A stretch of DNA of 64,000 bases. Source: Hyphochytrium catenoides. Taxonomy: Eukaryota > Protista > Hyphochytriomycota. A program made the position numbers and the translations under genes. Every line of letters starts with the position of its first letter. Position 1 is the first letter of the stretch. Under the pieces are notes generated by a model. The model was given only the letters and a program-made list of their open reading frames with translations. It was not told where the DNA came from and searched no databases. The stretch spans positions 1 through 64,000 of the forward strand of contig FLMG01000658.1 of assembly GCA_900088475.1 (NCBI GenBank), written 5' to 3'. Below, piece after piece: positions 7,974 to 60,823 of the stretch.

Positions 7974-9679
7974 CTAGCGATGGCCATCGTGCTGGTTTGC
8001 CTTCAATGTGTTAGTGACGACGCCCAGGTGGATAATCCTGTCCCCAGCCTGCACGACAGGATTCACGTTCTTTCCAATGACAATTCCGTCTTCTGGAGCA
8101 AAGTAGTCCCTAACATGATCGCCTAGTAGAGAGAATGGTGAACATAAGGTAGTGACACATCATAGGCTGGGAAAATCCCTTACCGAAGACATCATGGACT
8201 GTTGCTATCTTGTCGCCCTTCCTCACCCACGTGTTGACCTCTGCAGTGTAGAGGTGGTAGAAATGAGACGGGAATGGCTTTAGTAACAGAGACATATACT
8301 TGGCGTGCTAACGGTCATAGGAGCAAGCACTGACCTGGATGGACGACCATCAGCCCTCCAACATCTGCATAACTCCACGAAGACCGCCCACAGACCACTG
8401 GGTCCACATCTGGCGGCTCATTGGAGGCTTCGACAGAGAGCATGTTCAGATACACCATAATGTTATACACGCCGACGAGAGCGTGCCTGATGTACCGCCG
8501 CTGAAAGACTAGCGGGTTGCCAATCTCCACAGTGATGGCGGGGATTTGCAGCTTGGCGGCCGCCCCTCTGAGGGAGCCGTCCGGACTGGAGTTATGTACG
8601 ACAATCTGCGGGTTCTGTAGAAGCGCCATCCGTCTGGCCATTGGCTCCAGAAGATTTGCCCGCACATAAAGAGAGTTTACTCTTCCGTGGCTCGCAGTGT
8701 GAAGGTCAATGAGAAAGTCTAGCTTCTTGATAATCTTGTGCATGAACTGGTAGCAGTATTGATTCCCGCTATCGCCGTCTGGCTTGCCAGGGAACAATCT
8801 GTTGAGATCCTGACCGTCACTGAAGGTTCTGGTGCACCGCATAAAGCCCGGGTTATTCACCACGGGCACGAAGACCACGATGCCGTGCAGAGAGTCGACA
8901 TCCAGCTCCTTAACTAATCTGTGGATCAGCGGGATGCCATTGAGCTCATTGCCATGCACCGCTGCTGTTATGCCTAATATTGGCCCTGAGAGCATCCCTC
9001 GTGCTATGATCAGCGGGATCTTCAGGGTACGAGAGAACGCATCCATGGTAAGCGAGAGCCATAACCGGTGGATGCGGCCGGGAAGGAGATCAGAAAACTC
9101 CACAGTGTCCAACAGCACGCGCTTGTCTGTCTCCTCATAATGGCTGAAGTCTGAGGGCCTTCGAACCATTGGCCTCTTTTTCTCAAGCATTGAGCCCAAC
9201 ACGTTTAGCACATTCATGCCCTCCGTCGTATCTTGAAAGCGAGCGTTGTCAACCTTGGATGCCCAAGCCAGCACGTTAACATTCACACCTGCGCCTCCAG
9301 CCTCTCCCAGCCACCGTTGCCACTTCTTCAGGATCTTACCAAAGGCAACTTTATTGACAGTGGCATAGTCAAAGAGCCGCATAATCCTCTCACGGAAGTT
9401 CAGCAGCGTCAGTCTGTCATGCTTCTTCTCTTCAGCGAGCTTGTGGCCCTCGTCCACTAACTTCTTGATCTCTACCGTGTAAAAGTCATCAACCCTTCTT
9501 ACGTCTTCCTCAATAATGGCTTCAAACTTCAGAACCGTATCGCTAATAGTCTCAGGAGGCGGATGCTCCTCGGCAGAAGTTCCAGCTTGCCGGATTAAGT
9601 TCTTGAGCTCTTCATACCGCACGTACTGATCCTTCCATTCAGGCACCATGCGCACAAGCATCTGCTTGGAAAACTTCAT
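7974..9679 (-). CDS. SPX domain fused to succinylglutamate desuccinylase/aspartoacylase-family (AstE/AspA, M14 Zn) hydrolase; 3 exons (9679-8335, 8240-8184, 8122-7974), 516 aa
   Basis: SPX N-terminus MKFSKQM..VPEWKDQYVRYEELK and NKVAFGKILKK; hydrolase motifs AAVHGNELNG, DLNRLFPG, LIDLHTAS, ITVEIG. GT-AG splicing restores the family C-terminus VHPEVNTWVRKGDKIATVHDVFGDHVRDYFAPEDGIVIGKNVNPVVQAGDRIIHLG. Confidence 0.93.
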
Positions 9680-12065: not shown

Positions 12066-13082
12066 ATGGGAGTTCTTAAAGATGGGAGAGTGGCGTTGGG
12101 GCTCCTACCTACCTTGGCTGTCAAGAATGAGAGTCAACCAGAGGATGCGGAACTGGGGTCAACGCCATCCGCATCCGGAGACTGGCAGGATCTAGAAAGT
12201 TATTGCATTATTGATCAGCAAACTGTCTCTTGTGCCAGTCAGGACGTGATTCGCCTTGATGACCAGCTGTCGCCAAATGTGATGGTAGATGAAGCAGAGC
12301 GATCTCTCGAGGTCAAGGTCCCGGACGTCATTGTCGACAAGTCAGTGCCCGCATCTACAGCAGTTTCGACAGTGAAGAGACCGAGCAAGGTGCACTGGGT
12401 GGATAGGACCATCTTATGGCTTAAGTTATTAGCGGGGACCTTATACATCGTTGGCTCCATTGGATATTATCCGCAGCTCAACCCAGATGGCTCTGTCTTA
12501 GGCTACCGAATAGGTCGATGGAGCTATTGCACAGGTTCTACGATTCTCTTTATGTGTGGCACGCGAGGGTTTGCCAAACATTTGATTGCCAAAGCGCTGA
12601 TCACAAATGTCAAGGTTCAGAAACAGAAGAAGCATACCTTCGCACGCTGGAGTAGCATACTACGAGCCATGTTGTCAGACTTTCTCTGTTGGATATATCT
12701 CTTCTCTTTAGGTGCATCAGGATTTTATCTTCTTGGTATTGGCTTCTACTCTGCTGGACAATCGCCGGCTGGGACGTGGGCTTTCATTGTAGGAAGCATC
12801 TCTTACGTCATGTGCGGAGTAGTGGAAGGCATGCAGATATTGCTGGGATGGAAAGCGGGCGAAGAAAGTGTAGCCACCCAATGGCGTCGGAAGCTCGCGC
12901 ACGGATTGTCAGACGTAGCTGCGGGCTGTCTGTTCTTACTTGGGAGTGTCTATTTGTTGCCCTCGTACTTTGCGTCCCCCGGAGGTGCCTTGATGGTCGC
13001 GAATGGGTTCCTGATTGGCTCCGTGATGTACTTTCTCACTGTGTGCGACCATATGTATCTATTATATAAAGCACAGGGCTAA
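12066..13082 (+). CDS. Multi-pass membrane protein with about three YrhK-like helical-hairpin repeats, 338 aa
   Basis: Repeated motifs GTLYIVGSIGYYP..GRWSYCTGST, GFYLLGIGFY..GTWAFIVGSISY, GCLFLLGSVYLLP..ANGFLIGSVMY; intronless ORF. Confidence 0.75.
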   Translation: MGVLKDGRVALGLLPTLAVKNESQPEDAELGSTPSASGDWQDLESYCIIDQQTVSCASQDVIRLDDQLSPNVMVDEAERSLEVKVPDVIVDKSVPASTAVSTVKRPSKVHWVDRTILWLKLLAGTLYIVGSIGYYPQLNPDGSVLGYRIGRWSYCTGSTILFMCGTRGFAKHLIAKALITNVKVQKQKKHTFARWSSILRAMLSDFLCWIYLFSLGASGFYLLGIGFYSAGQSPAGTWAFIVGSISYVMCGVVEGMQILLGWKAGEESVATQWRRKLAHGLSDVAAGCLFLLGSVYLLPSYFASPGGALMVANGFLIGSVMYFLTVCDHMYLLYKAQG

Positions 13083-17401: not shown

Positions 17402-20400
17402 ATGGGCGTTCGAGGGCTGCAAAAGTTTCTCCTACGACAGACGAAAGCTCTTCACAGGAAGAAACATGGACAACAGGTACCGTTCTTCGACACATTCTCC
17501 TTAACGTTGGCCTTGCCATCCCCGCGATTGACCTTTCATGCCGTCTCTTGCCAGGACAATGGCTTAAGTTCGCCAACCACTAGAGAGGATGAGTACAGCA
17601 AAGGAGGAGAAGACGTCGGCCACAACGGGAAAGAAGGAGAAGGACCTCAACCACGCCGTGCGACAGGTAAACCGTCCATTTGCAAGAATGTGATTGTGGA
17701 GGAGCAATGCTCTAACAATGGAGTTCTTCAGCAAATCCTCCGTTAGATGCTGGAGCGGTTAACTATCGATGCGGGGAGCCCAAATTCATACCGAGAAACT
17801 CCAGGCTGTATGTTGACGCCTTGGGGTTCCTCTACCATCTGTTCGGCAAACAAGAGGAGGAGGAGTCGCGGAGGAGACGCGAGACTCTAATTGCTGATCC
17901 TCCATCATCCCAAAAAGGCTTGGGAGAAGATGCCTCCTTCTTTGGATATTCAACTCGCCGAGAGTACGGTGGCTCTTACAGAGCATTCGATAGCTTTGCG
18001 CGCCGAGAGATCCGGCGTTTACAATCGCTTGGGGTCTTCGAGAGCATTCTCTTCTACTTTGACGGGATGATGCTCCAGGCAAAGCATGCAACGCACGAGG
18101 AGCGCGCTCTGCAGAAAGAGCAGAGGTGGAGCAACCTCTATCGATATTTCTGCGGCCGAACTTCTGCCCCACCTGCTCAGGAAGATATTCCAATGCCTCC
18201 TTTGATCTATGAACAGTTTCTCCGAACGCTAGAAGCAATCACGCATGAGGAAATCGACCTTGAAGACCAACTGTCTCGACTCTCCATCAGCCACGCCACG
18301 GGCGGCGAAGAAGGTGAAGGAAAACTGTCCCCATCTTCTCCCCGTTCTTCCACGAAAATCTGTATCGTACACTGTACTGTTGAGGCTGATGTTGAGATCG
18401 CTCGAGATGTAGAGAACTGGAATAAACAATCCTTCCCTTCTTCATCTGAACCATCATCCCGTTGTGGCCAAGCTTACTGCTACGGAGAGGACAGTGACTA
18501 CCTGCTGATGAGAGGCTGTCCGTACATAAGATTTGGTCACATTTCAGGGCATCATCAGCCACCACCCTCCTCGGGCAACCATTCAACCAACGCAACGTCT
18601 GATAACAGTAATCAGCCTGATGGAGTTGTGGCACGAGAGGTATGGAGAAGAGAGGAGGTGGCAGCGATGCTTAGTTTGACGGAGTCGCAACTGGTCGAGT
18701 GGGGCATCCTTCTTGGCAACGACTACACGAAGGAATATTCACGGTCTGAGTTCAAAGTCCGAAAGAGTCTGCCGCAAGGGTTAGCTCATCGTAACTCAAA
18801 TGTCGAATCAGAGGGGGCTGGAGATGTAGCCATCCAGCTGAACAATGACTCAAGTTATACAATTCAGGAGATGCTTTCCATAGTTCGGGAGGGCGGCGAC
18901 TCGTTCCAACTGACATCAGACAACCCTGAAGTGCAAGCTGCAATAGCTCTCTCCAGAGCCATCTACGAGCACCAAGACAGCCAGTGGTCCTTGATTATGC
19001 AAGAGCTCAAAAAGGCTCAGCATCTAAACCATGACGAGAAGGACCTCCCGTCGCCCTTACCGGGGCAGAATCACGTATCTACCGTAGCCAAGAGCCAAGA
19101 TAATGGCGAAGAGGAAGAAGAAATCTCCTCATCCATGTTCGCTCTGACGTCCAACCAACGACAGTGTCTCGAGTCCTGGGCAAAAGATGTCGCTTGGAAA
19201 CAGATAGCCATGACCCAAGGCGTCGCCTGGGCGGTGCTCCATCAACTGGCGAAAGCGTCAAACTCAACTGATGAAGCGAAGAGCTCGACAGCGTTTTCGT
19301 CAGTCTTTACACCCACTCATCTCGTAGCGATCGAAACGATGCTTGAGACGATACAAAGCTCACTCGTTCTTGACCCCGGGGAGAAGCTTTGCCGCTACGA
19401 TTGTGAGAGCAATGACGGAGATTCTCTCCTTCAGGACCTATTGAGCGTGACCCAGCATGCCCCTGATAAGCTTGTACGACCTACCTGGGCGGACTTCCAG
19501 GCAGCTCATACCTATCAGCTGATGCTGAGACATTTCTTCTCTTCCGCATCGACGAAGAGTCCCAGGACCAGACAAATATCCCATCCATCTGCTCCATTCA
19601 GAGATTTTTTGGGGCATCCGCAGCAGTTCTATGAAGGAGAAGTTTTCCACAAGCTCATGGCGGGGCTACACGTGAACGAAGACGACGATAAAGCCTGCGA
19701 ACAGCCAATGCCAGCTTCAGAGGAGGAAAAGCTTGTGCCAGGAGAAGCCGAGTCGCTCCCTATCGACTCCCATCGGGAAGAGATTCTACGTAAGATCCGG
19801 AGTGACCGAGTGACAATTATCCATGGCGAAACAGGATGCGGAAAGTCCAGTCGGCTTCCAGTGATGCTACTCCAAGATGCTAATGAACGCGGGGAGCGCT
19901 GCAAGATTTATATTTCACAGCCTCGACGAATAGCTGTCACAGGTCTCACCCGAAGACTACGGCCACAGCTTGGCAAACGGGTGGGCATGTTAATGGGCCA
20001 CGGGATCCGAGATGTCTTTCCTGAGACAAAAGTAATCTTCGCAACGACCGGTTACCTGGTCCGCTTGATCGCCGGCAACATCGGCGCACTGCGATCAGCC
20101 ACGCATCTAATCGTTGACGAGGTCCACGAGCGTTCAATTGATAGCGATGTAATCTGCCTACTATGCAAGCGCATACTCCAAGACCTGCCACATATCAAGA
20201 TTGTACTAATGAGCGCCACGATTCACACCGAACTCTACAGAGAGTACTTCTTGGGCAGGAATCGTGGAGCTCGGTCTACCTCTCTTAAAGTGGCAGACGC
20301 CAACAGTGAAGGTGACGGCTACCCTGATATTATGGTTGACCACTCCGAGGACTCATTAGAGGATGATCAAGACGAGTACCCAGGCAGTGAAGCCTATGGC

Positions 20401-23400
20401 GACATGAAGTGTTTATCAGTCGGAGTGAAGCGCTTTCCGCTCAACATTCTGGTAAGAGTCTTGTCCTCCTAGGTCCCCTGCTTTTGCTGTTCCTGCTAGC
20501 TCTTGCTTACTTACTTTTACTGATAGTACGCCAGAGACATTGCGAGCAAGATCTTCCATGAGAATGTGGTGGTGAAGCAGCTCTGCACCAGCATTGAAAC
20601 ACAGACAGCAAAAGCTTCCATGACGGCCATTCCGAGTGACGCCATCGCGAAGCATCAGCTTCGAGTTGCGGAAGAGCTGATTAGGAGTCACATTGCCATT
20701 GGCAGTGGAGTCCTGGTGTTCCTCCCAGGTCTCACTTCTATTACGGAGCTCTGGGACCTCTTAGAAGCCGACTCACGATTTAGCTTATCCGTCGTCCACT
20801 CAGACGTACCATTCGAAGAACAAGTAGACATATTTTCGGCCGTCCCAGAGGGAAAGATCAAGGTTGTTCTGGCAACAAATGCTGCAGAGAGCTCCATCAC
20901 AATCCCAGATGTTGACTATGTCATATGTCTTGGCAGGGGTCGAGCGATGTGCTATAACAAAGCCTCGCACCAGAGCGTCCTAACAGACATCTGGATCTCA
21001 AAAGCATCCGCGACGCAGAGGGCGGGCCGCACAGGACGAGTGCGGCCCGGGACGGTTTTCCGCCTTTATAGTGAGAGCTTGGAAAAAAAATTTCAAGAGC
21101 ATGACACTCCCGAAGTGCTTCGGACGACTCTCGAAGATGTCATTCTTCAACTGTTGACCATGTTGGAGCACGCCGACGGCTTCGGAGGTGTCTTTCCCAT
21201 ATTAACCCAGCTCATCCAGCCTCCAGATCTCAGCAACGTGAGCAGAAGTTTGGAGCGCCTCACGAAACTCGATCTCATAGATGAGTCGGAGAATCTTACC
21301 TCCAGTGGGAGGTTTGCGGGGCAGATGCCTGTATCCCTGGAGCTCTCTCGCTTACTCCTCTTCGGTATTGTCCTTGGCATCCCGACGGAGGCTGTCGTCC
21401 TTGCCGCTGTACTATCCGTTGGCAAAACACCGTTCCGCATAGCCGTCCCTATGATCCACACTGATGTCAAGGAGTATAACGACATTATTCGGCAGTCGAT
21501 GACTTTCGCGGACAAGGTGGACAATGGATGCAAATCAGAACCTATTCTGTGGCTGAAACTGGTTTCAAAGTGGCTTGGCATGCCAAACGAGAGAGCTGCT
21601 ACCGCCTGGGCAGTCCGTAATGGTATTGCAGCAAAACGGCTGAAGCAGATGTCACTCGTAGCAAAGAGTTTGCGCCTCTCTGTAAGCCGCTTCCTCACCC
21701 ACAAGCCCGACGTATGGAATTGGAGAGGCTCAAGGCAACAAAAGGATGACGGAAAAGCGTATGAGACTTCCGACGATGGCTACCTAAGAGACTTCCAGTC
21801 ACTCAACAGTTTGGACGGCAAGACTTTGAACCGTCTTCGACTGATACTCACGTGGACATTCGCTGACAATCTTCTCTGTTCCAAGACCACAAACGAGATG
21901 GCAAAGTTCAGCAAGCCCTTGCAGCGGACCGCTGAGGAGAAGAAAGGACAGGAATGGACAGGATCTGCATGTCAGTTGAACCTCACTAATGCGGCCGTGT
22001 CTCTAGAGCATCTGGCAACTCTCCTTCCTGAGAGCCACCCAGGCGACTACGGGAGCTATAATGGCTGGAAACTGGAGAGAAATGTACACCGCCTGCATAC
22101 TGCCTATCTGTTCAAAACCAATCTGGACCACATTTTAGCTGATCTTTGGTCAGTATGCAGTGAGTTAGGAATAGTAATGTTCTGGGTCATGATGGACGTA
22201 CAGGATGTATCTGTGGGCGAGAAGGAGGATCACAAGGGAGAGAGCAAAAAGAAGAAGGCAAAGAACAAGGAGCTCAAAGGAGCCGCCCGCAGGACTGAAC
22301 TACGACTTGTCATCTCAAGAGAAGTTGCAATGGAGACCCTGCTCGGTTCTTCAGAAAGTTTGGAGGCACGCAAACGTGAAGGTTTGGAAAGAGGAGGGGG
22401 AAGTGAGCCCAAAGTAGATCAAGATACTTCCCTCATCCGTGCAGTCTTCGCAACCTTAGCAGCGAAATTGAAATTGAGTGAGACCGTCCCGCGGCTGCTC
22501 CCCACCAAGCAAGGCTATGAGCCATTCAAACCTAAGTCCTTCACTACAAACTCAACCCAATACATAGTCTTCTCAGGTACCGGCTCAATCATGCTGAGCA
22601 AACATGTGCAGCTTTTGAAGGCTCTGAGTTCAAAGTTGCCCTCCTCGATCGCCCTCAAGATACCTACGAACGGGAAAGCGCAGTTGATCTGCACAAATGC
22701 TCATGGGATCACAGAGGACATGCTCCGGAGAATATTTTTCTTTCAAGGGGTAGAGAAACGACAGAAGGGAGAAGCTAACTCGGCCCAGAGCCTCCTGCAA
22801 AGTCTAGGAACTAGCGACGATCTCTACGACGACACAGCATTGTTTTTGGGGAAGGACACTATGATCGACTCTGTTACTATGTCAAAGTCCAGCGTGTTAG
22901 CTATCGCTTACAGAGCTCCCAAAAGGGTTGGCGTTGGGGTTGATGGAACATATCCTCTTGTACACGATGCCCCTCTCAGTTGTCGGCTGATCTGGTCTTG
23001 CATGACTAGGAACCTTAGGCGAGAATGTCGGAAATTGAGACTGCCAGCTCTAGAGAAAGAAGCCTATGATGACACACTCAAGTCTCCAGCAAGGAAAGAG
23101 TGCGGAAGAGCTGCTGAAGCGAAGCGGAGTTGTTCTGATATGGAAGTAAAGGTTGAGAGCGCCTCAACACGCTCGACGCCAGATATATCGACGGGGGTTG
23201 CTCCGGCTTCCCTGACATGGCGGCATCTGGGAGGAATCACATCCTGTGATCCACCAGTTCTCAAAGCCTGTAGCATCTCCCGCAACTCTTTCTGTAGTGT
23301 ATCAGTCCACCTAGGCAGGGGGCCAGTCTTTGCAGTGGGCACGTCCTCCTTGATTTTTCAGGGAGGAGGACTCATGTTTGGTGAAGGCATTACGCTTCTT

Positions 23401-25839
23401 CCCCCAGGTTGTCGGTGGCTATCACTGGCGCTGCTGTGCCTGGGTACACAGGAGCTACATCACACGCTCCTGATACCAGGGTGCGCTGGAGTGAAGCAGG
23501 TAGATGACGCGGAAGAATCGTTCCGTGATGGGGTGTTTGACTCTCCTCTCAATGAAGATGACCTCAGCCTCTGCAACCAAGTGAAAGAGATTCTCTTACA
23601 TGCGTTCCCCTCGACGACAGAGGCACGCACTTTCACACGGAATGCAGCTCTGATCGATAGAATCGAGAAGCTCTTCGAGACATGGGAAGATTCCTATGGT
23701 TACGGACAGACCGCCGCAGTACCTGATCAGGAAAATGATGGAGAAGAAGAAATGCATGAGGAACGGCCCCTAGCGGCAGAGGAGAGTCAACCGTTGCAGT
23801 CCCAGAGAAATAATAACAGAGCAACCGCTACCGCACAAGTGACCACAGACGCTTGTCCAGTCGCTGCTCCCTTTCCTCACAGAGGGAACGATAACGTTAT
23901 TGAGCATGTACTGCCCACTGGTGACGGCTTGAAGCGTTGCCCGCTCTGTTCAGAGAGCTGTTCGAACATCTCACTACTTCTAAAGCACATGGAGGACAAA
24001 TCCACTCATGGTCTGGGGAAGGGCCAAATTGCAATAGCTCTGTATGGATCATTGACCAAATGCTCATTCTGTCCGTCCACAAAGCAGAAAGTGTACCTCC
24101 AGCCTTTGCAGCTACTGAATCATCTGACTAGTGCAGTCCACGCAATACCCCTGGCCGAAGCAAAAGAGAGTGTCGCTAATATCCTTTCCTTGAAGTCTGG
24201 CACCGCTGCAGAACGGCCGGTGCAAGCTATATATCATTCCAATGCCGGAGAAGGGACGCAGAAGACTGTTGCTGTCAGCGAAACCAAAGCTCTGGTAGCA
24301 CCTGTGACGAGAATGGCGGGTCCAGCTGTTGCACTTGCTCTAAGACAACAGCAGCCCTCAGCAACTGCTCGCCCTCATAGCGTGGGGAGGGATAACGTTA
24401 ATGAGCCTGTACTGCCCACTGCTGGAGTCCTGAAGCGGTGTCCACTCTGTTCACTGAGTTTTTCGACCATCTCACCCCTCGTAAAGCACATGAAGGACAA
24501 ATCCATTCATGGTCTGAAGAAGAGACAGGTTGCAATAGCTCTATATGGCTCACTGACCAAATGCCCAATCTGCCCCTCCACGAAGACGAAAGTGTACCTC
24601 AAACCGTTGCTGCTCCTGAATCATCTGACCAGTGCAAAGAACCATGGGATGCCCCTATGTGAAGCAGAAGGTATCGTCGCTAAGGTTCTTTCGTGTGCAA
24701 CGGCTGCAGAACTGCCAGCGCAGCCTACACAGCTGCAAGCAGGTGAAGGCATACAGCGTATTCCTGCGCTCAGCAAAAAGGAAGCACAACAACTAACCAC
24801 ACCAATTACAGCGAACGCGACTCCTACTCCTCAGTACGATCAGTCTCCAGCGCCTGTGGTCTCTGAAGGAGGGCGGGATCAGGTTATTGAACCTGTACTG
24901 CCCACTGCTGAAGGACAGAAGCGGTGCCCCCTCTGCTCAGAGAGCTATTCCACCATCTCGCTACTTCTAAGGCACATGAAGGACAAATCCACTCATGGTC
25001 TGAAGAAGGGTCAGATTGCGATAGCTCTGTATGGATCCTTGACCAGATGCCCAGTCTGCCCGTCAACGAAGACGAAAGTGTACCTCCAGCCTTTGCGGCT
25101 CTTGAGTCATCTGACCAGTGCAAAACACGGAACGACCGCCAGCGAAGCCGAAGGTATCGTTGCTAAGGTTCTCTCCATGGATTCCGCGCAAACGGCAAAG
25201 GCCCCATCATATATTCAGCCAGCAGGTGGAGAAGAAGAGACCCATGGAGCGGCAAATGGAGATCGGCCAGCTCCCTCCCACGTGAAAGACCCGGCACCTA
25301 TAAACGAGGAATTTTCTAACATTAAAATGCTGTTGGAGCACACGATAGATACTCATCGCATCGAACCCCAGACCGCCGCTATACTTCTATTTGGAGCATT
25401 GACTCGATGCCCTGTTTGTCCTTTGGCGAAGCAGGAGATATATCCGTCCCCTGAGAATCTCTTCGCTCATCTCCAAAGCTCAGCCCACGACCTGGCACGT
25501 GAAGAAGCCAAAGTAATGGCCCTGAAGGTCTTTTCCCTCTTACATTTGCGGACGGAGACTAAGTCACATGACTTAACTCTCTCTGCATCATCACTACCGC
25601 GGACGATACCTGCAACTACTCTGGCCTGTCCCTTCTGTCCATGGAAGACAGCCCGAAGAGACAGCCCAGCAACCAAAGTGCTGGGCACCATAAGCTGTCC
25701 CCGTTGCAGCAGCAAGGCGAAGAAGAAACTATACCGGGCACCCTACAGCCTCTCTTCGCACCTGCAGAGTGGGGTTCACAAGCTGCCAATGGACGAAGCG
25801 GATCGTATTGCGCAGGAAATGTTCTCTCCGTATCAATAG
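17402..25839 (+). CDS. Asteroid/FAM120-like PIN (FEN1/XPG family) nuclease + DExH/RHA RNA helicase + HA2-like region + C2H2 zinc-finger repeat array; exons 17402-17476, 17555-17666, 17732-20451, 20527-25839; ~2,739 aa
   Basis: PIN motifs MGVRGLQKFL, LYVDA, YGGSY, YFDG, EAD, EDSD, LLGNDY. Helicase motifs GETGCGKS, SQPRRIA, TTGYL, DEVH, MSAT, VFLPG, ATNAAESSITIPDV, QRAGRTGRV. Introns 17667-17731 and 20452-20526 are canonical GT-AG and join the three ORFs in frame (RFPLNIL|YARDIA); the in-frame intron 17477-17554 is probable. Confidence 0.9.
23890..25176 (+). repeat. Three ~300-bp coding repeats (starts 23890, 24391, 24877), each encoding two C2H2 fingers; two more degenerate copies follow to ~25830
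   Basis: Near-identical DNA and peptide units PVLPT..KRCPLCS..KHMKDKSTHGLKK.Q.AIALYGSLT.CP.CPSTK.KVYL.PL.LL.HLTSA..H. Confidence 0.95.
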
Positions 25840-27806: not shown

Positions 27807-29364
27807 ATGGGAAATAGCTATTGCAAATCCTGGTGCTACGAAAGGACTGTGCGGAACAAAAAGCTGAAAGAGCCCCTGATGGCGCCCAACAAAAAGTCAA
27901 AGTCTGGCCATCTCAAGTCCAGCAACAAGGAAGACAGACTAGGACTAGCAAAACCTCTGACGGTAGAGGAGAAAGCCGAGGAGCCGACTACTTCGGCCGA
28001 AAGCAAGCTCCGGGACGCTTGTGAGGAGAAGAACGTTGACTATTCGGCTCTCATCCCTCTCATCCTCAAGGTCCAAGTCAAGTCAAAAGATCTGACAAGC
28101 TTTCTGCGGATCCTGGCGAAGTATGAGGCCGCTACGAAAGCCTATACTTTCTTCTTCAAGCACCAGTACAGCGAGGAAGACTTAGCCGAGCTGGTAGAGC
28201 TCAACGCTTATGCTGGCAACATCTTAGAAGCGGGGAGTCTCGCTACGCACGTTGCCTACGGTAAGGCTCCTTTGCAGAAGAGACTAAGCGGTATGCAGCA
28301 GTCTGAGGCGCTGTTCAAGCGAAGTCCCGACACGAGGTAAGATTATTGGCCTTGGCCAGATGTGGCACCTTCTGAAAAGCCATCTTCTTTCCCGTCTTGT
28401 CCTCGTTCCTCCTGCCAGTTTCCAGGCGGCGGCCTGTAATGATCAGATCTCCCTTCTAAGGGAGCAGAAGCTGTTAGAGGATCAGCTAGAGGTGCCAGGA
28501 AAGTTCATCGACTGCTCCCTTGTAGAAACCCTCGCCAACCTCATTCGCTACCAAGCTGCTGACAGTCGGTCACTAATAACCGCGAAAGCTCTCTGCCAAA
28601 AGTGCAACGTCAGTGAGCGGAGATTCTGGCTGATACTGGTGAACACGATGGCAGAGAGTGGCCAATGGTTGGAGTTGAAGGACATCCTGACACATTCTCG
28701 GGTCCCGATTCCTACTTCTGTTGTCGTCAGAATCTGCATGCGATATGAGAAGTGGAAGCTGGCCAAGGAACTGTCAAAGAAGCTCCCAACTAGGGGATTC
28801 GTCGACGAAGATAGGGTAAGATTTTTTGCGGCGCTGGCCACTTCTGTGCGCCCGTCAAGAATCTAACTTGCCCTACGGCGGGGATTGTAGGTAAAGAAGA
28901 TGATGCAAGAAGTGCTCCACAAACTTGAGACGATAGACGTGGAGAAGACGCCTGCGAAGAAGGAAGGAGAGGCATCGCCCAAGTCAGGCAAAAAGCGCGG
29001 AGGAGGAAAGAAGGATGCCTTACGAGAGGCTCAAGAGCCTCCGAGCCCTCCTAGCACCAAGAAGTCTTCCCATAAGGCGAGGGAAAAGGATCTCCCAAGC
29101 GAACCAGAGGAAATTGCTGGAAAGTCAGGAGAAGAAAGGGAAGGGCGAGAAGCATTGAGAAAGAAATCGTCTCGAAAGAAGAAGACACGGAAGGAAACTC
29201 AAGAAGATAATGAAGAGACTGAAGTTTCCCCTCGAAGCAACGGTGAGAGAGAGAGAGACAGCAGCTGTTCACCGGGTAAGGTAGGTGACAAGGCCGAAGT
29301 AGCTCCGACAAAGAGCAAACGTGGCAAGAAGGCCTCTAGGAAGTCGAAAAAGCAGGAGACCTAA
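27807..29364 (+). CDS. Vps16 C-terminal alpha-solenoid-like protein with a predicted N-terminal acylation motif and a Lys/Glu-rich tail; 3 exons (27807-28336, 28419-28815, 28891-29364), 466 aa
   Basis: FQAAACNDQISLLREQKLLE..KFIDCSLVETLANLI..AKALCQKCNVSERRFWLILVNTMAESGQWLEL matches Vps16_C; starts MGNSYCKSWC; both introns are GT-AG and in frame. Confidence 0.8.
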
Positions 29365-34944: not shown

Positions 34945-35420
34945 AACATCAGCAGGAGGAACAAACAAGAGCAGAGGAGCTACAGCAGCAGCAGGAGCGC
35001 AGAAGAAGCAGAGAAGGGGCAGCAGGGAGGAGCAGCAGGATGCACCAGCCGCAACCGCAGCAGCAGGTGCTGGAGCAGGGGAAGAAGCAGTAGCAGCAGA
35101 GAACGGAAAAGTTGATACAGGAGCAGCAGGAGCAACAAGGTGCACAGGGGCGGCGGTAGGAGCAGAAGGAGCAGCAGCAGCCGCAGGAGCAGCAGCAGCA
35201 GCAGCGGCGATTGGAGACACAGCAGTCTGCTGCGGCAACGGCAACCGGAGTACCGATCAGCAGCAGCAGCAGGAGGAGCAGTGGCGGCGATGAAAGCGGC
35301 GACGGTAGGAGGACGAGCGGCTGCCGCAGCAGGATGATGAACAGCCACCACGGAAGCAGCGGCGAAAGGACGAGGAGGAGCAGCAACAACAAACAGGAGG
35401 ATGAGCGGCCGGGCAGCGCA
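34945..35420. repeat. (GCA)n-rich low-complexity tract
   Basis: Dense agcagcagc repeats; ORFs open in all six frames because of the composition. Confidence 0.85.
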
Positions 35421-35984: not shown

Positions 35985-36009
35985 TTTCCTCTGTCTCTCA
36001 CTCTCTCTG

Positions 36010-36042
<33 letters not shown>

Positions 36043-36119
36043 GTTTCTCTCTCTCCTCTGTCTGTCTGTCTCTCTCTCTGTCTCTCTCTGTCTCTCTCTC
36101 CCTCTGTCTCTCTCTCTTT

Positions 36120-36152
<33 letters not shown>

Positions 36153-36312
36153 TCACTCTCTCTCTCTCTCTGTGTCTCTCTGTCTCTTTCTTGTCATCCT
36201 CCATATCTCTCTCTCTGTACTTTTTGCCCTCTCTCTTGAATTTCTGGTCCCCAATCTCTTCCTTTATCGTAGCAATGCCGCAGGGCTAGAGAGAGAGAGA
36301 GAGAAAGAAAGA
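35985..36312. repeat. (CT)n microsatellite followed by a short (GA)n tract upstream of the TPR gene
   Basis: Direct inspection of the sequence. Confidence 0.95.
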
Positions 36313-43800: not shown

Positions 43801-43859
<59 letters not shown>

Positions 43860-50672: not shown

Positions 50673-53600
50673 CTATCCAAATCTCTGAGCAAAAAAGGAA
50701 GCTAAAGCTGCTTTGGCAGACTGAGTGCTCGGTGCTCCTGCATCAGAGTCTGACGCACTATCATCCTCGTCATCCTTCTTGAGCGGGGCCGCTGCGGAGG
50801 AAGAAGCAATTGGGGAAGAACTTTCTGTCGCTATAGATGGCGCACTGCCATTTTGTGCCTGATCCTTGGAAGGAATGCCCCAGAGGTCAGCTCCAATATC
50901 GTCGTCGAACTCATCATCTTCATCCAAGCCCTCCATTGTATGAGTGCCAGCATCTTCTTGCTGCTGGGTAGGAGCTGGACCCTCGCTGTCTTCTAGTTTC
51001 ATTGTGAGGATTTTTGTCTCCACCTCCGGAAACTCTTGTCTAGGTTCATGGCTAGCTGGGCTGGGTATGATTTGGTCAGATAGCGAGGGTGACTCAGCTC
51101 CATCGTTGATCTCAGTACTTGGCGTTTGGTCAAGGAGTCGAGATGTCTCCTTATCCTCTTCCTGCAAATTTACACCATTCGTGGGTTGCGACTCTAAAGC
51201 CATACTTCCTCCCCAAAGATTGGAAGCACGTTCCCTGTCTTCCTCTCTGCTGCAGTGTTCACACTGGCTTGCCCCTTCAGGAATGAGCTGCAATCCCCAG
51301 CCCTTACAACGCGTACAAGCTAGGTAGAGGGGTTCCCTTGTTCTCCATTGGTGCCAGGAGAGGAGATCTAACAGTTCGTCCGTCCTGTTGTTCTTCAAAG
51401 CGCTTTTCAATTTATCTCTCTACAGTGGAGAGGCAGGTCATGAGCTGGGTTGTTTTGAGGTGCCCTGAATATAGTGCGATATCGCCCTTACCTGATCACT
51501 GTCCTGAGGAAGGAAAACGGAACATAATCTAAAGACGTCTTCGGATTGGTCTTCTGAGAGTTTACCTTCAGCGCAAAGCTTTCGTGCACGCTCCTCCATC
51601 CACTCAACCTCGTCCCCGCTTTCCTCTCCTCCTGAGTCATATTCTCTTGTTGAAGATAGAGATAAGGAGTCGTCGTCCAGAGCCGAAGAGGAGCTCTGAG
51701 AATCATCGGAAAACCCGCTTGACGAACTCGTGCCCTCTCCACGTCTGTCATCAGCAACCTCGTCGCTCCTAGCCCTGCCCTCATCCTCTGCCAACTCCCT
51801 GTCTTTCTCTCTGACGACAGCTTCAGCTACTGGAGACGGTGCAGGAAGCGCTGCTGGCTCAGGATGCTAGCCAGTACAGCGCGAGACAGTGGAAATTTCG
51901 GGAAGGATGATGTTCAGCTTCTTAGCTTGTTGGCACAATACCCTACCAATATATTATGATATCCCTTACCGGCGGCGGCTCAATGAGCTTTCCAGCAGCA
52001 GAGAGGAAAGGGAGCCCGCCAATATCCCATCGACTTTCCCGAGTGTACTACCAAATTAAGCCATCAAAACCATCCAGCGAGACGTAACGAAGCGAAGTGA
52101 GCTGCAAGTCCAGTCAGAGGGAGAGACATGTGTACCTACATGATTGTAAAAGTAACTGCGCCCGTTTGGACCAATGAATTCTTGCCATTGGATCTAGAAT
52201 TGAGGGGCATCATATATTAGAGACACAGGTCGCTCTAATTGGGCATCAAAGCAGAACTAAGCAGAGCCAGCTTCTGAGGAGAGGAGTAATGTCTATCAGG
52301 GAAAGGTGCAAATAGCCTCACCCCTTCGGGCATTGTCTTTTCAGGCAGAGAGAATACGGCTGATCCCAGTGCAGTAGCAGCTTCATTGCCGGAGCTAGGT
52401 ACAGCAGGTACACTGCTTCGGTCACGGACGTCTTTCCGCTTCCGGCGTTTGAGCTCTTCAGCTTCTTCAAGGATATCAGCTGTGAGGGCTGGATGGAGCC
52501 GTGCGCTAGCGGTTAGTCCACAAGAAGAACGGGCAGAATGGAGATGAGGCAACTAAAAACTGCTTTACCAGTGACTCTGAGTTCGCTCTCGTCCACTCCG
52601 CCATTCTCCTGGAGCCGGTCCACTTCTCTAATGATCTTCGCCCGGTGCAATCTTACATCTACCCCGAGTTCTAGTAGATCGTGCTCTGTCATGGTAGAGA
52701 GCATGAAGCCGTCTACAGGGTAAGACAGGAAGACTGGAAGGTAGGCCCGCAAGACTTCGAATTGAGAAAGGAAGGCTGCTATCTCCGTAACGCTTAGTTG
52801 TTCCAACTTCTTTTTCTCAGTGGAGGATGAAGTTGGAGCTGACGAAGCTAGAGCTGGATAGCGCTTGTGCCTAGCTTTTTCACCTCTTCTATGCGTATAT
52901 TCATAGCACTCCTGACAGAAGACTGCCAGACCGCACTCGAGGCATTTGAATGCTGGGTACTCAGCCTCGCAGACGGAGCATATGTCGCTCCTATGTGGTG
53001 GTTTCATGGGTTCTCCACCAATTGCCTGAGGCGCCTGGTAGGCCACCAAGGCGGTTGAGGATGGCGCTGTGTGACGTAACGTCAGCGCCCTTACGCATGC
53101 TCAAGGACCATGATGAGCTGGTCAAAGCAGTCCTCACCTAAAGGTCCTTTGCTCTTTTGTTCAGCAGTAGCCTTGTCTTGAAGCCTCTGCTGGGCAGCAG
53201 CTGCCGCCAACATCTCTGCGGGCTTAGTCCAACGGCTCTCCCTTGTTCTGCCATTGTAGTAGTAAGGTCTACCATCTGGAGACGTATGCTCCGTCCATTC
53301 TGCACCCTGAGATTCAAGAAGAAAAGAAGTGGTATGAACCGGCCTTGTAGAGACAGCCTGAAGACTGAGGGTAGGTTTGAGATACGGCTAGGTGCACGCA
53401 AATGCAGATCCAAAACGTGACACGCTAATATGGAAACACCTTGTTAAGGAGAGAGATCAATAGAGTAAAGTCTGGAGCAAGTAAACGCTTGAAGACTTGC
53501 GAAGGTAATCGATAGGCTCGTCTTTTTCCTCACTCAACCACCCTCACCGCTGCTATAATCTGCTCATCAGTCCAAGATGGCATGGAAGCGCTGGACGGCT

Positions 53601-60385: not shown

Positions 60386-60823
60386 TTAACTGTCGGTCCA
60401 GGATATCTTGACACGGCCCAAGGCCAGCGGCCCAGCGGTGGCGGTGAATGCCGCGGGACTGAGGTCCAAATCTTGAGATTTGCAGCCAGGGCACTTGTCC
60501 ACAATGGTGACTTTGGCCGTACCGGCAGGGCCCGTGACCGTGACGGTTTTCCCGCACCATGGGGAAGACCCTGGGACATTCCCAAATTGTGGGCCATTGA
60601 GAGCAGCCACAAAATCAGAGTTGCTGTTTTGCCAGCCACAAGCTCCTAACCCCACCTCATAGTAGGTAGCATCGCCAACAAATCGGGCTGCCAAGGCCAT
60701 TTGACTTCCATCCAATAGCAGTCCATAGCCCATAATAAGGCCAAGAATCATTGTCTTCTTGTTGTTGTTGCCATACCACGAGGTTGGCGACTTCTTCTTA
60801 GAAGATGTGTGTGCAGTCTGCAT
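60386..60823 (-). CDS. RlpA-like double-psi beta-barrel (expansin/loosenin-like) secreted protein; the true start may be the internal Met at ~60751
   Basis: GDATYYEVGLGACG, FVAALN, WCGKTVTV, VTIVDKCPGC, DLDLSPAAF, GRVKISW; a hydrophobic signal-like segment precedes the domain; intronless. Confidence 0.93.
   Translation of the reverse strand: MQTAHTSSKKKSPTSWYGNNNKKTMILGLIMGYGLLLDGSQMALAARFVGDATYYEVGLGACGWQNSNSDFVAALNGPQFGNVPGSSPWCGKTVTVTGPAGTAKVTIVDKCPGCKSQDLDLSPAAFTATAGPLALGRVKISWTDS

Follow-up and report, generated by a model that had tools for sequence, protein, structure and literature searches.

A gene on the minus strand of contig FLMG01000658.1 of Hyphochytrium catenoides (assembly GCA_900088475.1) raises the question of what an SPX domain controls when it is joined, in one protein, to a soluble zinc hydrolase of the AstE/AspA superfamily. 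We analyzed positions 1 to 64,000 of this contig, hereafter called the window, in which the gene occurs in one copy. The gene is intact, has three exons and encodes a two-domain enzyme, and we regard this gene model and the assignment of both domains as virtually certain. By analogy with other SPX proteins, we consider it rather probable that the enzyme is an amidohydrolase gated by inositol pyrophosphate (PP-InsP), with an N-acyl or peptidyl acidic amino acid as its substrate.

The gene extends from 9679 to 7974 (9679..7974) on the minus strand, and its spliced product has 516 aa; the coordinates of exons, introns, domains, and motifs are collected in Table 1. The start codon is the first ATG after an in-frame stop located 13 codons upstream, and it opens an uninterrupted open reading frame (ORF) of 454 codons (9679..8315, minus strand) that covers both domains; the coding frame exits at the GT donor at 8334. 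Residues 1-515 of the spliced protein are collinear with full-length homologues of 517-549 aa (for instance, they align to residues 1-516 of homologue P0002, and likewise to more than 30 other proteins), and the C-terminus (...HLGVV...DGHR) matches the family pattern (...HLGVV...DGHx, homologues ending in DGHL or DGHT) to the last residues. The splice model is thus supported by the end-to-end alignment with homologues and by the agreement of the C-terminus with the family consensus. An earlier note on this DNA had placed both domains in a single exon, which holds for SPX and for the catalytic domain; the C-terminal beta domain of the hydrolase extends from exon 1 into exons 2 and 3. The protein lacks a leader peptide and begins directly at the SPX motif MKF.K, in keeping with a location in the cytosol.

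The N-terminal SPX domain proposed in that note was borne out by both the hidden Markov model (HMM) search and the structure search. The region scores 49.1 bits against Pfam PF03105 (gathering cut-off 27.8), and a phmmer search of Protein Data Bank (PDB) sequences matched residues 1-132 to the human XPR1 SPX domain (E 1.6e-7), with further matches to Chaetomium Gde1 SPX, rice SPX1/2, PHO1;H1, Pho90, and Vtc3. An AlphaFold2 (AF2) model computed for residues 1-172 from the SPX regions of 24 family members has a predicted local distance difference test score (pLDDT) of 91.6; its predicted helices (residues 3-10, 13-18, 22-34, 42-83, 89-126, 136-144, and 152-167) fit the SPX fold, with an N-terminal hairpin, two long helices, and two short C-terminal ones. 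All 39 of the 39 top Foldseek matches in the PDB are SPX domains, the best of them (template modelling score, TM, 0.82) being 8tyv_B, from the complex of XPR1 SPX with InsP8. The H. catenoides domain shares its fold with that of XPR1/SLC53A1 (8tyu, 8tyv, 5ijh; TM 0.77-0.82) and keeps Y22, K26, and the K-x-x-K-K-x-x-K/R pattern. It differs from XPR1 in sequence (SPX identity ~20%) and in what it is attached to, since the output of XPR1 is an EXS phosphate-export channel, whereas here it is a soluble hydrolase.

The basic surface of SPX in XPR1, VTC, and Gde1 binds inositol hexakisphosphate (InsP6) and inositol pyrophosphates. A gap-free alignment to XPR1 residues 132-176 equates K115, K118, K119, and R122 of the H. 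catenoides protein with XPR1 K158, K161, K162, and K165. Five of the six contact positions mapped from XPR1 are unchanged (Y22, K26, K115, K118, and K119), and the sixth, R122, is a conservative K-to-R change; K2 is also kept. The XPR1 mutants K2A, K158A, and K162A-K165A lose phosphate export (PMC11933459). Across the family, the same positions are retained in most members, at 80-98% (Y22 in 72 of 77, K26 in 75 of 77, K115 in 85 of 91, K118 in 82 of 91, and K119 in 89 of 91), and position 122 is Lys in 81 of 91 and Arg in the H. catenoides protein and four others. The mean identity across the family SPX region is only ~22%, and the positions conserved at 90% or more are M1, K2, F3, Q6, L9, Y19, Y22, K26, L102, N109, K115, I116, K118, and K119. 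Conservation of the unchanged contact positions in an otherwise divergent SPX domain therefore argues for selection for inositol (pyro)phosphate binding. The domain is a genuine SPX that looks ligand-competent, and it is likely to bind inositol phosphates.

The C-terminal region, residues ~196-516, is by sequence a zinc amidohydrolase of the AstE/AspA superfamily (COG3608, 'predicted deacylase') with intact metal-binding and catalytic residues, as the earlier note had recognized. It scores 129.8 bits against Pfam PF24827 (AstE_AspA_cat; gathering cut-off 25), and the phmmer search of PDB sequences matched 3cdx and DoeB at 1e-13 to 1e-16. Besides the residues in the motifs of Table 1, R284 was assigned as a further substrate-binding residue, and H242, E245, R284, D291, N293, H327, R333, R340, R371, and E385 show no variation in 121 relatives. 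The C-terminal beta domain, formed by the end of exon 1 and by exons 2 and 3, aligns to the last residue of the homologues. The second zinc ligand is followed by an invariant stretch of the subfamily's own, HTAS.GR.NS.Y.R, to which DoeB and 3cdx have no matching residues in the alignments. Each motif that the earlier note had named was found in its place, from Y22, K26, and KILKKWQR (residues 115-122, in which the usual 'DK' reads 'QR') through RRPS (173-176) to HGNE, DLNR, DLH, and TVEIG.

The same note had further suggested that RRPS in the inter-domain linker could be a site for protein kinase A (PKA). All four positions are variable across the family and the motif is particular to the H. 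catenoides protein; because of this variability and the low pLDDT of the linker (~70), we rejected RRPS as a regulatory PKA site.

The combination of SPX with this hydrolase is shared by many other proteins. We surveyed the best 120 matches of a search of a 5.8-billion-protein database: the alignment covers the SPX N-terminus in 77 of them and the KILKK region in 91. Several eukaryotic entries that appear to have no SPX are truncated gene models still beginning inside the domain. Annotated proteins with this architecture come from dozens of fungal genera. Among fungi, the fusion is carried by Zoopagomycota (Basidiobolus, Neoconidiobolus, Massospora, Coemansia, Linderina, Smittium, and others), many chytrids, Mortierellomycotina, Glomeromycotina (Geosiphon, Ambispora), Calcarisporiella, and the Taphrinomycotina Saitoella and Pneumocystis. 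Outside the fungi, the fusion occurs in Amoebozoa (Balamuthia, Acanthamoeba), Rhizaria (Plasmodiophora, Paulinella), and stramenopiles (Paraphysomonas, Mucochytrium). Pathogens among the carriers are Pneumocystis, Balamuthia, Acanthamoeba, Basidiobolus, Plasmodiophora, and Synchytrium. No animal or land-plant homologue was found among the named matches, the fusion was not seen here in Dikarya outside Taphrinomycotina, and no orthologue from Spizellomyces punctatus was among the matches. Collinear orthologues have 38-45% identity overall and 55-59% in the hydrolase domain. These uncharacterized proteins, exemplified by Basidiobolus ranarum K7432_002412, Pneumocystis jirovecii T551_01152, Acanthamoeba castellanii XP_004335670, and the proteins of Neoconidiobolus thromboides, Balamuthia mandrillaris, Plasmodiophora brassicae, and Paraphysomonas (MMETSP1103), have the same domain order, are collinear with the H. 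catenoides protein from end to end, and have the same SPX contact and catalytic residues. When 1.84 billion representative proteins were searched with a profile, 11,777 family matches were obtained, 876 of them below 1e-30, with clusters of full-length fusions among the top ones. For many family members the source is a contig of transcript length or an MMETSP transcriptome, and thus the fusion is transcribed as one mRNA.

In a maximum-likelihood tree of the hydrolase domain (62 rows, 49 of them eukaryotic, including the H. catenoides protein), the eukaryotic rows separate from the ~320-aa bacterial enzymes with a support of 98 in the approximate likelihood-ratio test (SH-aLRT), and the fungal part tracks the species tree, which argues for long vertical retention of the fusion. 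The simplest history, as far as the sequences tell, would be a single old fusion followed by vertical inheritance. Among the members, the H. catenoides protein is divergent: its end branch measures 0.55-1.05 (median 0.23-0.3). It groups with the chrysophyte Paraphysomonas (SH-aLRT 92-96), not with fungi, and falls near Amoebozoa when Paraphysomonas is left out. The approximately unbiased (AU) test rejected its grouping with chytrids (p=0.012) and did not reject its grouping with all fungi (p=0.068).

The earlier note had presented the hydrolase as a new SPX output. This stands for the literature searched: searches pairing SPX with succinylglutamate desuccinylase, aspartoacylase, AstE_AspA, or deacylase found no relevant paper, a search for RimK with desuccinylase found nothing relevant, and the architecture is absent from a plant/algal survey (PMC8717665) and a dinoflagellate survey (PMC12388464), both of which catalogue unusual SPX architectures. 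However, it does not stand for databases, in which at least 77 of the best 120 matches carry the SPX N-terminus. The fusion is therefore a widespread, database-visible family that is absent from the literature searched.

In the mechanism that we propose, the SPX domain would act as a PP-InsP receptor reporting cellular phosphate status, by analogy with VTC, XPR1, Pho81, and Pho87/90, in which SPX occupancy activates or inhibits the attached module (PMC7381174). Ligand bound to SPX would alter the packing of SPX against the hydrolase or the oligomerization of the protein, and this change would switch amide-bond hydrolysis in a small carboxylate-rich substrate, presumably an acidic amino acid with an N-acyl group or a short peptide such as ATP-grasp ligases make. 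In that case the enzyme would form a branch of the phosphate-signalling (INPHORS) network with an output in amino-acid-derivative metabolism, not in phosphate transport or storage. An AF2 two-domain model of the exon-1 product (448 aa), which is a monomer without oligomer context and omits the last 68 residues, has a pLDDT of 90.3 and a predicted TM score (pTM) of 0.86, and the high pTM fits a defined SPX-hydrolase packing. That ligand binding to SPX gates catalysis is, by analogy with the other SPX proteins, evenly balanced in our estimate.

The best-surviving alternative is that SPX serves as a scaffold or localization module, through SPX-SPX dimerization or docking to phosphate-homeostasis proteins, and that the hydrolase is constitutive. 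Homotypic and partner contacts are known for SPX domains, as PMC10167327 describes, and a truncated, monomeric model such as ours leaves room for such contacts; however, the strongest conservation in the SPX region sits on the ligand-contact residues, and the covalent fusion has been kept across several eukaryotic supergroups, so that we consider a purely scaffolding SPX unlikely.

A second alternative concerns the enzyme itself, which could be an orthologue of aspartoacylase, AstE, or DoeB that merely carries an SPX domain. The Smittium homologue is named after DoeB in NCBI, and DoeB/EutE is both the best structural and the best NCBIfam match. The best PDB matches in Foldseek are DoeB/EutE 6twm, 3na6, 3cdx, and 2qj8 (E ~1e-16), followed, for the exon-1 model, by the cyanophycin dipeptide hydrolase CphZ, AstE, and the cytosolic carboxypeptidase CCP5. 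The protein shares the zinc-hydrolase fold, HxxE...H, and the catalytic Glu with the N-alpha-acetyl-L-2,4-diaminobutyrate deacetylase DoeB/EutE (6twm) and the structural-genomics entries 3cdx, 3na6, and 2qj8; unlike it, these are bacterial catabolic enzymes without SPX, and its identity to them is only 22-24%. The scores against the NCBIfam equivalog models are far under the cut-offs for DoeB/EutE (TIGR02994, 56 bits over residues 218-330 only, cut-off 402.7), aspartoacylase (NF002601, 30.4 bits, cut-off 180), and AstE (TIGR03242, 28.2 bits, cut-off 305.65), and thus the enzyme is none of the three. The invariant stretch of the subfamily that DoeB and 3cdx do not match speaks against orthology as well, and we regard it as quite improbable. 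N-acetyl-Asp, N-succinyl-Glu, and poly-Glu, which the earlier note had put forward as substrates, are conjectural candidates, and the protein scores under the cut-offs for the enzymes that use them.

The kind of substrate is suggested by comparisons of two sorts. From the offsets of the phmmer alignments and the aspartoacylase literature, R284, N293/R294, and R371 would be the counterparts of R63, N70/R71, and R168, with which human aspartoacylase binds carboxylate, and such an Arg/Asn mapping would fit an acidic substrate. The second comparison is with bacteria, whose closest relatives have 50-53% identity to the H. catenoides hydrolase domain and lie on Bacteroidota-type contigs. The earlier note had stated that related bacterial enzymes often neighbour RimK-type ligases, and this agrees with what we found: the hydrolase lies directly downstream of a GshB/RimK-like ATP-grasp ligase in two of the three bacterial loci, in translational coupling, its start overlapping the end of the ligase gene, and downstream of a gene for a ~480-aa soluble protein in all three. 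Adjacency to the ligase suggests that the ancestral role was hydrolysis of an ATP-grasp-made amide. Free-standing bacterial COG3608 hydrolases (P0093, P0104, P0110) have the subfamily motif and form the sister clade to the eukaryotic fusions; unlike the H. catenoides protein, they are ~320-330 aa long, have no SPX, and are genomically coupled to the ligase and the ~480-aa protein. The three genes (~480-aa protein, GshB/RimK-like ATP-grasp ligase, and COG3608 hydrolase) constitute a conserved operon on bacterial metagenome and metagenome-assembled genome (MAG) contigs (L001 3559-6990; L003 4531-6990). It looks like an uncharacterized system that synthesizes and cleaves a peptide or amide. The ~480-aa protein has no Pfam, NCBIfam, or PDB sequence match; it contains an ATP-grasp-like IKVPYSNAGQGVF stretch.

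Another sister architecture occurs in Absidia (Mucorales) and the chytrid Phlyctochytrium planicorne, in which HutD (PF05962) stands N-terminal to the same hydrolase subfamily in the place of SPX (P0130, P0131, P0134, P0136, P0144, P0149, P0173, and P0272, none of them in the window). The N-terminal accessory domain has thus been swapped at least once. Like the SPX fusion, these proteins combine the hydrolase with an accessory domain that may be regulatory; unlike it, they are longer (730-900 aa) and begin with HutD. HutD comes from the histidine-to-glutamate catabolic operon of Pseudomonas and is seemingly a ligand-binding cupin. By analogy, the swap weakly hints at N-acyl-glutamate-like ligands. 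It also lends something to a third alternative, in which the hydrolase domain binds a ligand without catalysis and the whole protein is a two-input sensor or regulator resembling stand-alone SPX proteins. However, the zinc ligands, the catalytic Glu, and the substrate-binding Arg/Asn residues are invariant in the 121 sequences, which include free-standing bacterial enzymes, and we hold a non-catalytic role to be highly improbable. The chance that the fusion is an artefact, with two adjacent genes read as one or a decaying pseudogene, is negligible given the uninterrupted reading frame through both domains, the canonical splice sites, the C-terminus that fits the family, and the recurrence of the architecture in independent genomes and transcriptomes.

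Several observations weigh against control of the hydrolase by inositol pyrophosphate as proposed here, or against its extension to the H. catenoides protein. Beyond its long branch, this protein differs from the rest of the family in having R122 in place of Lys at the sixth basic position, where the usual preceding Asp is also replaced by Gln, and in the absence of the family-conserved W-R-K-R motif after the last SPX helix. A single-sequence search of the 5.8 billion proteins with the SPX region only (residues 1-215) returned no match at E<=1e-3; given the HMM, PDB phmmer, and fold searches, this result is explained by the divergence of the region and the size of the database and is no evidence against SPX. 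We infer the coupling of the two domains, and the substrate class is drawn only from analogy with AspA, AstE, and DoeB and from the bacterial operon context. Around the orthologues in Neoconidiobolus, Linderina, Plasmodiophora, and Balamuthia, there is no conserved neighbour and no functional hint, and in these four loci the partner genes for the ligase and the ~480-aa protein were not seen beside the hydrolase gene. In Neoconidiobolus thromboides, the gene directly downstream of the orthologue encodes a spermidine synthase (L005 10740-11847); such a gene was not seen in the three other eukaryotic loci, so its position is probably a coincidence.

Other features of the window include a large gene with DEAD/Helicase_C domains and repeated C2H2 fingers (17821-20472 and 20566-25839, plus strand, with a gap of ~90 nt between the two parts), located 8 kb from the SPX-AstE gene. 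It has 71% protein identity to Spizellomyces punctatus SPPG_08391 and 71.6% DNA identity over 4.3 kb, with no flanking synteny. Its other named relatives, from 48% identity or less down to ~32%, are all from stramenopiles, and the few chytrid matches start at ~32%; the likeness to the S. punctatus gene could reflect a close chytrid relative or a transferred element. The C-terminal part contains four diverged modules of ~250-290 nt, spaced ~490 nt apart (23918-24186, 24405-24633, 24891-25176, and 25351-25530, plus strand), each of which encodes a C2H2-type finger pair; the S. punctatus gene also contains repeats of these modules. Long CT/AG microsatellites and a GCA/GCG-rich repeat (1999-2302, 35989-36191, 43804-43857, and 35150-35225) yield spurious SLSLSL, ERERER, and poly-Ala/Leu/Cys ORFs in all frames at ~34.8-36.3 kb. 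Further coding pieces are listed at the end of Table 1.

Table 1. Positions in the window of the SPX-AstE gene, its exons, introns, domains, and motifs, and of other coding pieces.
Feature	Position	Strand	Basis or remark
Exon 1	8335..9679	-	ATG 9679; aa 1-448 and first base of codon 449; SPX, linker, whole catalytic domain
Intron 1	8334..8241	-	94 nt, GT..AG, GTCAGT...TGCAG; excision restores family consensus PEVNTWVRKG
Exon 2	8240..8184	-	57 nt; aa 449-467, EVNTWVRKGDKIATVHDVF
Intron 2	8183..8123	-	61 nt, GT..AG, GTAAGG...CTAG
Exon 3	8122..7974	-	C-terminal 49 aa and TAG stop (7976-7974)
SPX domain, aa 1-168	9176..9679	-	Pfam PF03105, AF2 fold, Foldseek
Y22 (9616-9614) and K26 (9604-9602), N-terminal ligand-contact positions	9602..9616	-	XPR1 alignment
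KILKKWQR, aa 115-122, basic cluster on helix 4	9314..9337	-	XPR1 alignment
Inter-domain linker, aa 169-195, including RRPS (aa 173-176) at 9163-9152	9095..9175	-	pLDDT ~70
AstE/AspA-type catalytic domain, aa 196-420	8420..9094	-	Pfam PF24827, 3cdx/6twm alignment, Foldseek
HGNE, aa 242-245, zinc ligands H242 and E245	8956-8945	-	Aligned to 3cdx, 6twm
DLNR, aa 291-294, with substrate-binding N293 and R294	8809-8798	-	Aligned to 3cdx, 6twm
DLH, aa 325-327, zinc ligand H327	8707-8699	-	Aligned to 3cdx, 6twm
TVEIG, aa 383-387, catalytic E385	8533-8519	-	Aligned to 3cdx, 6twm
YrhK-like membrane protein	12066-13082	+	Coding piece
Vps16 C-terminal region, part of a multi-exon gene at ~27.7-29.4 kb	28360-28866	+	Coding piece
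B-box and SAM domain protein	52513-53049	-	Coding piece
Small DPBB_1 (RlpA/expansin-like) protein	60386-60823	-	Coding piece

The value of these findings lies in the protein family, not in this locus, which holds one divergent member. We advance only tentatively the broader proposal that the SPX-AstE fusion is an ancient and overlooked arm of phosphate signalling, a PP-InsP-gated amidohydrolase of Holomycota, Amoebozoa, Rhizaria, and stramenopiles that would break down a small acidic N-acyl amino acid or an ATP-grasp-made peptide. The family offers a testable lead for phosphate-signalling research, with a soluble protein amenable to in vitro work. The SPX partners covered by the INPHORS review serve phosphate uptake, export, storage, or foraging, or the regulation of phosphate signalling (PMC7381174). 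That an amidohydrolase which is soluble and has no obvious phosphate chemistry has stayed attached, across several eukaryotic supergroups, to a ligand-competent SPX domain suggests that PP-InsP signalling may extend its control to a pathway in which amino-acid derivatives or small peptides are handled. If this is true, pools of nitrogen and carbon metabolites would be tied directly to cellular phosphate status.

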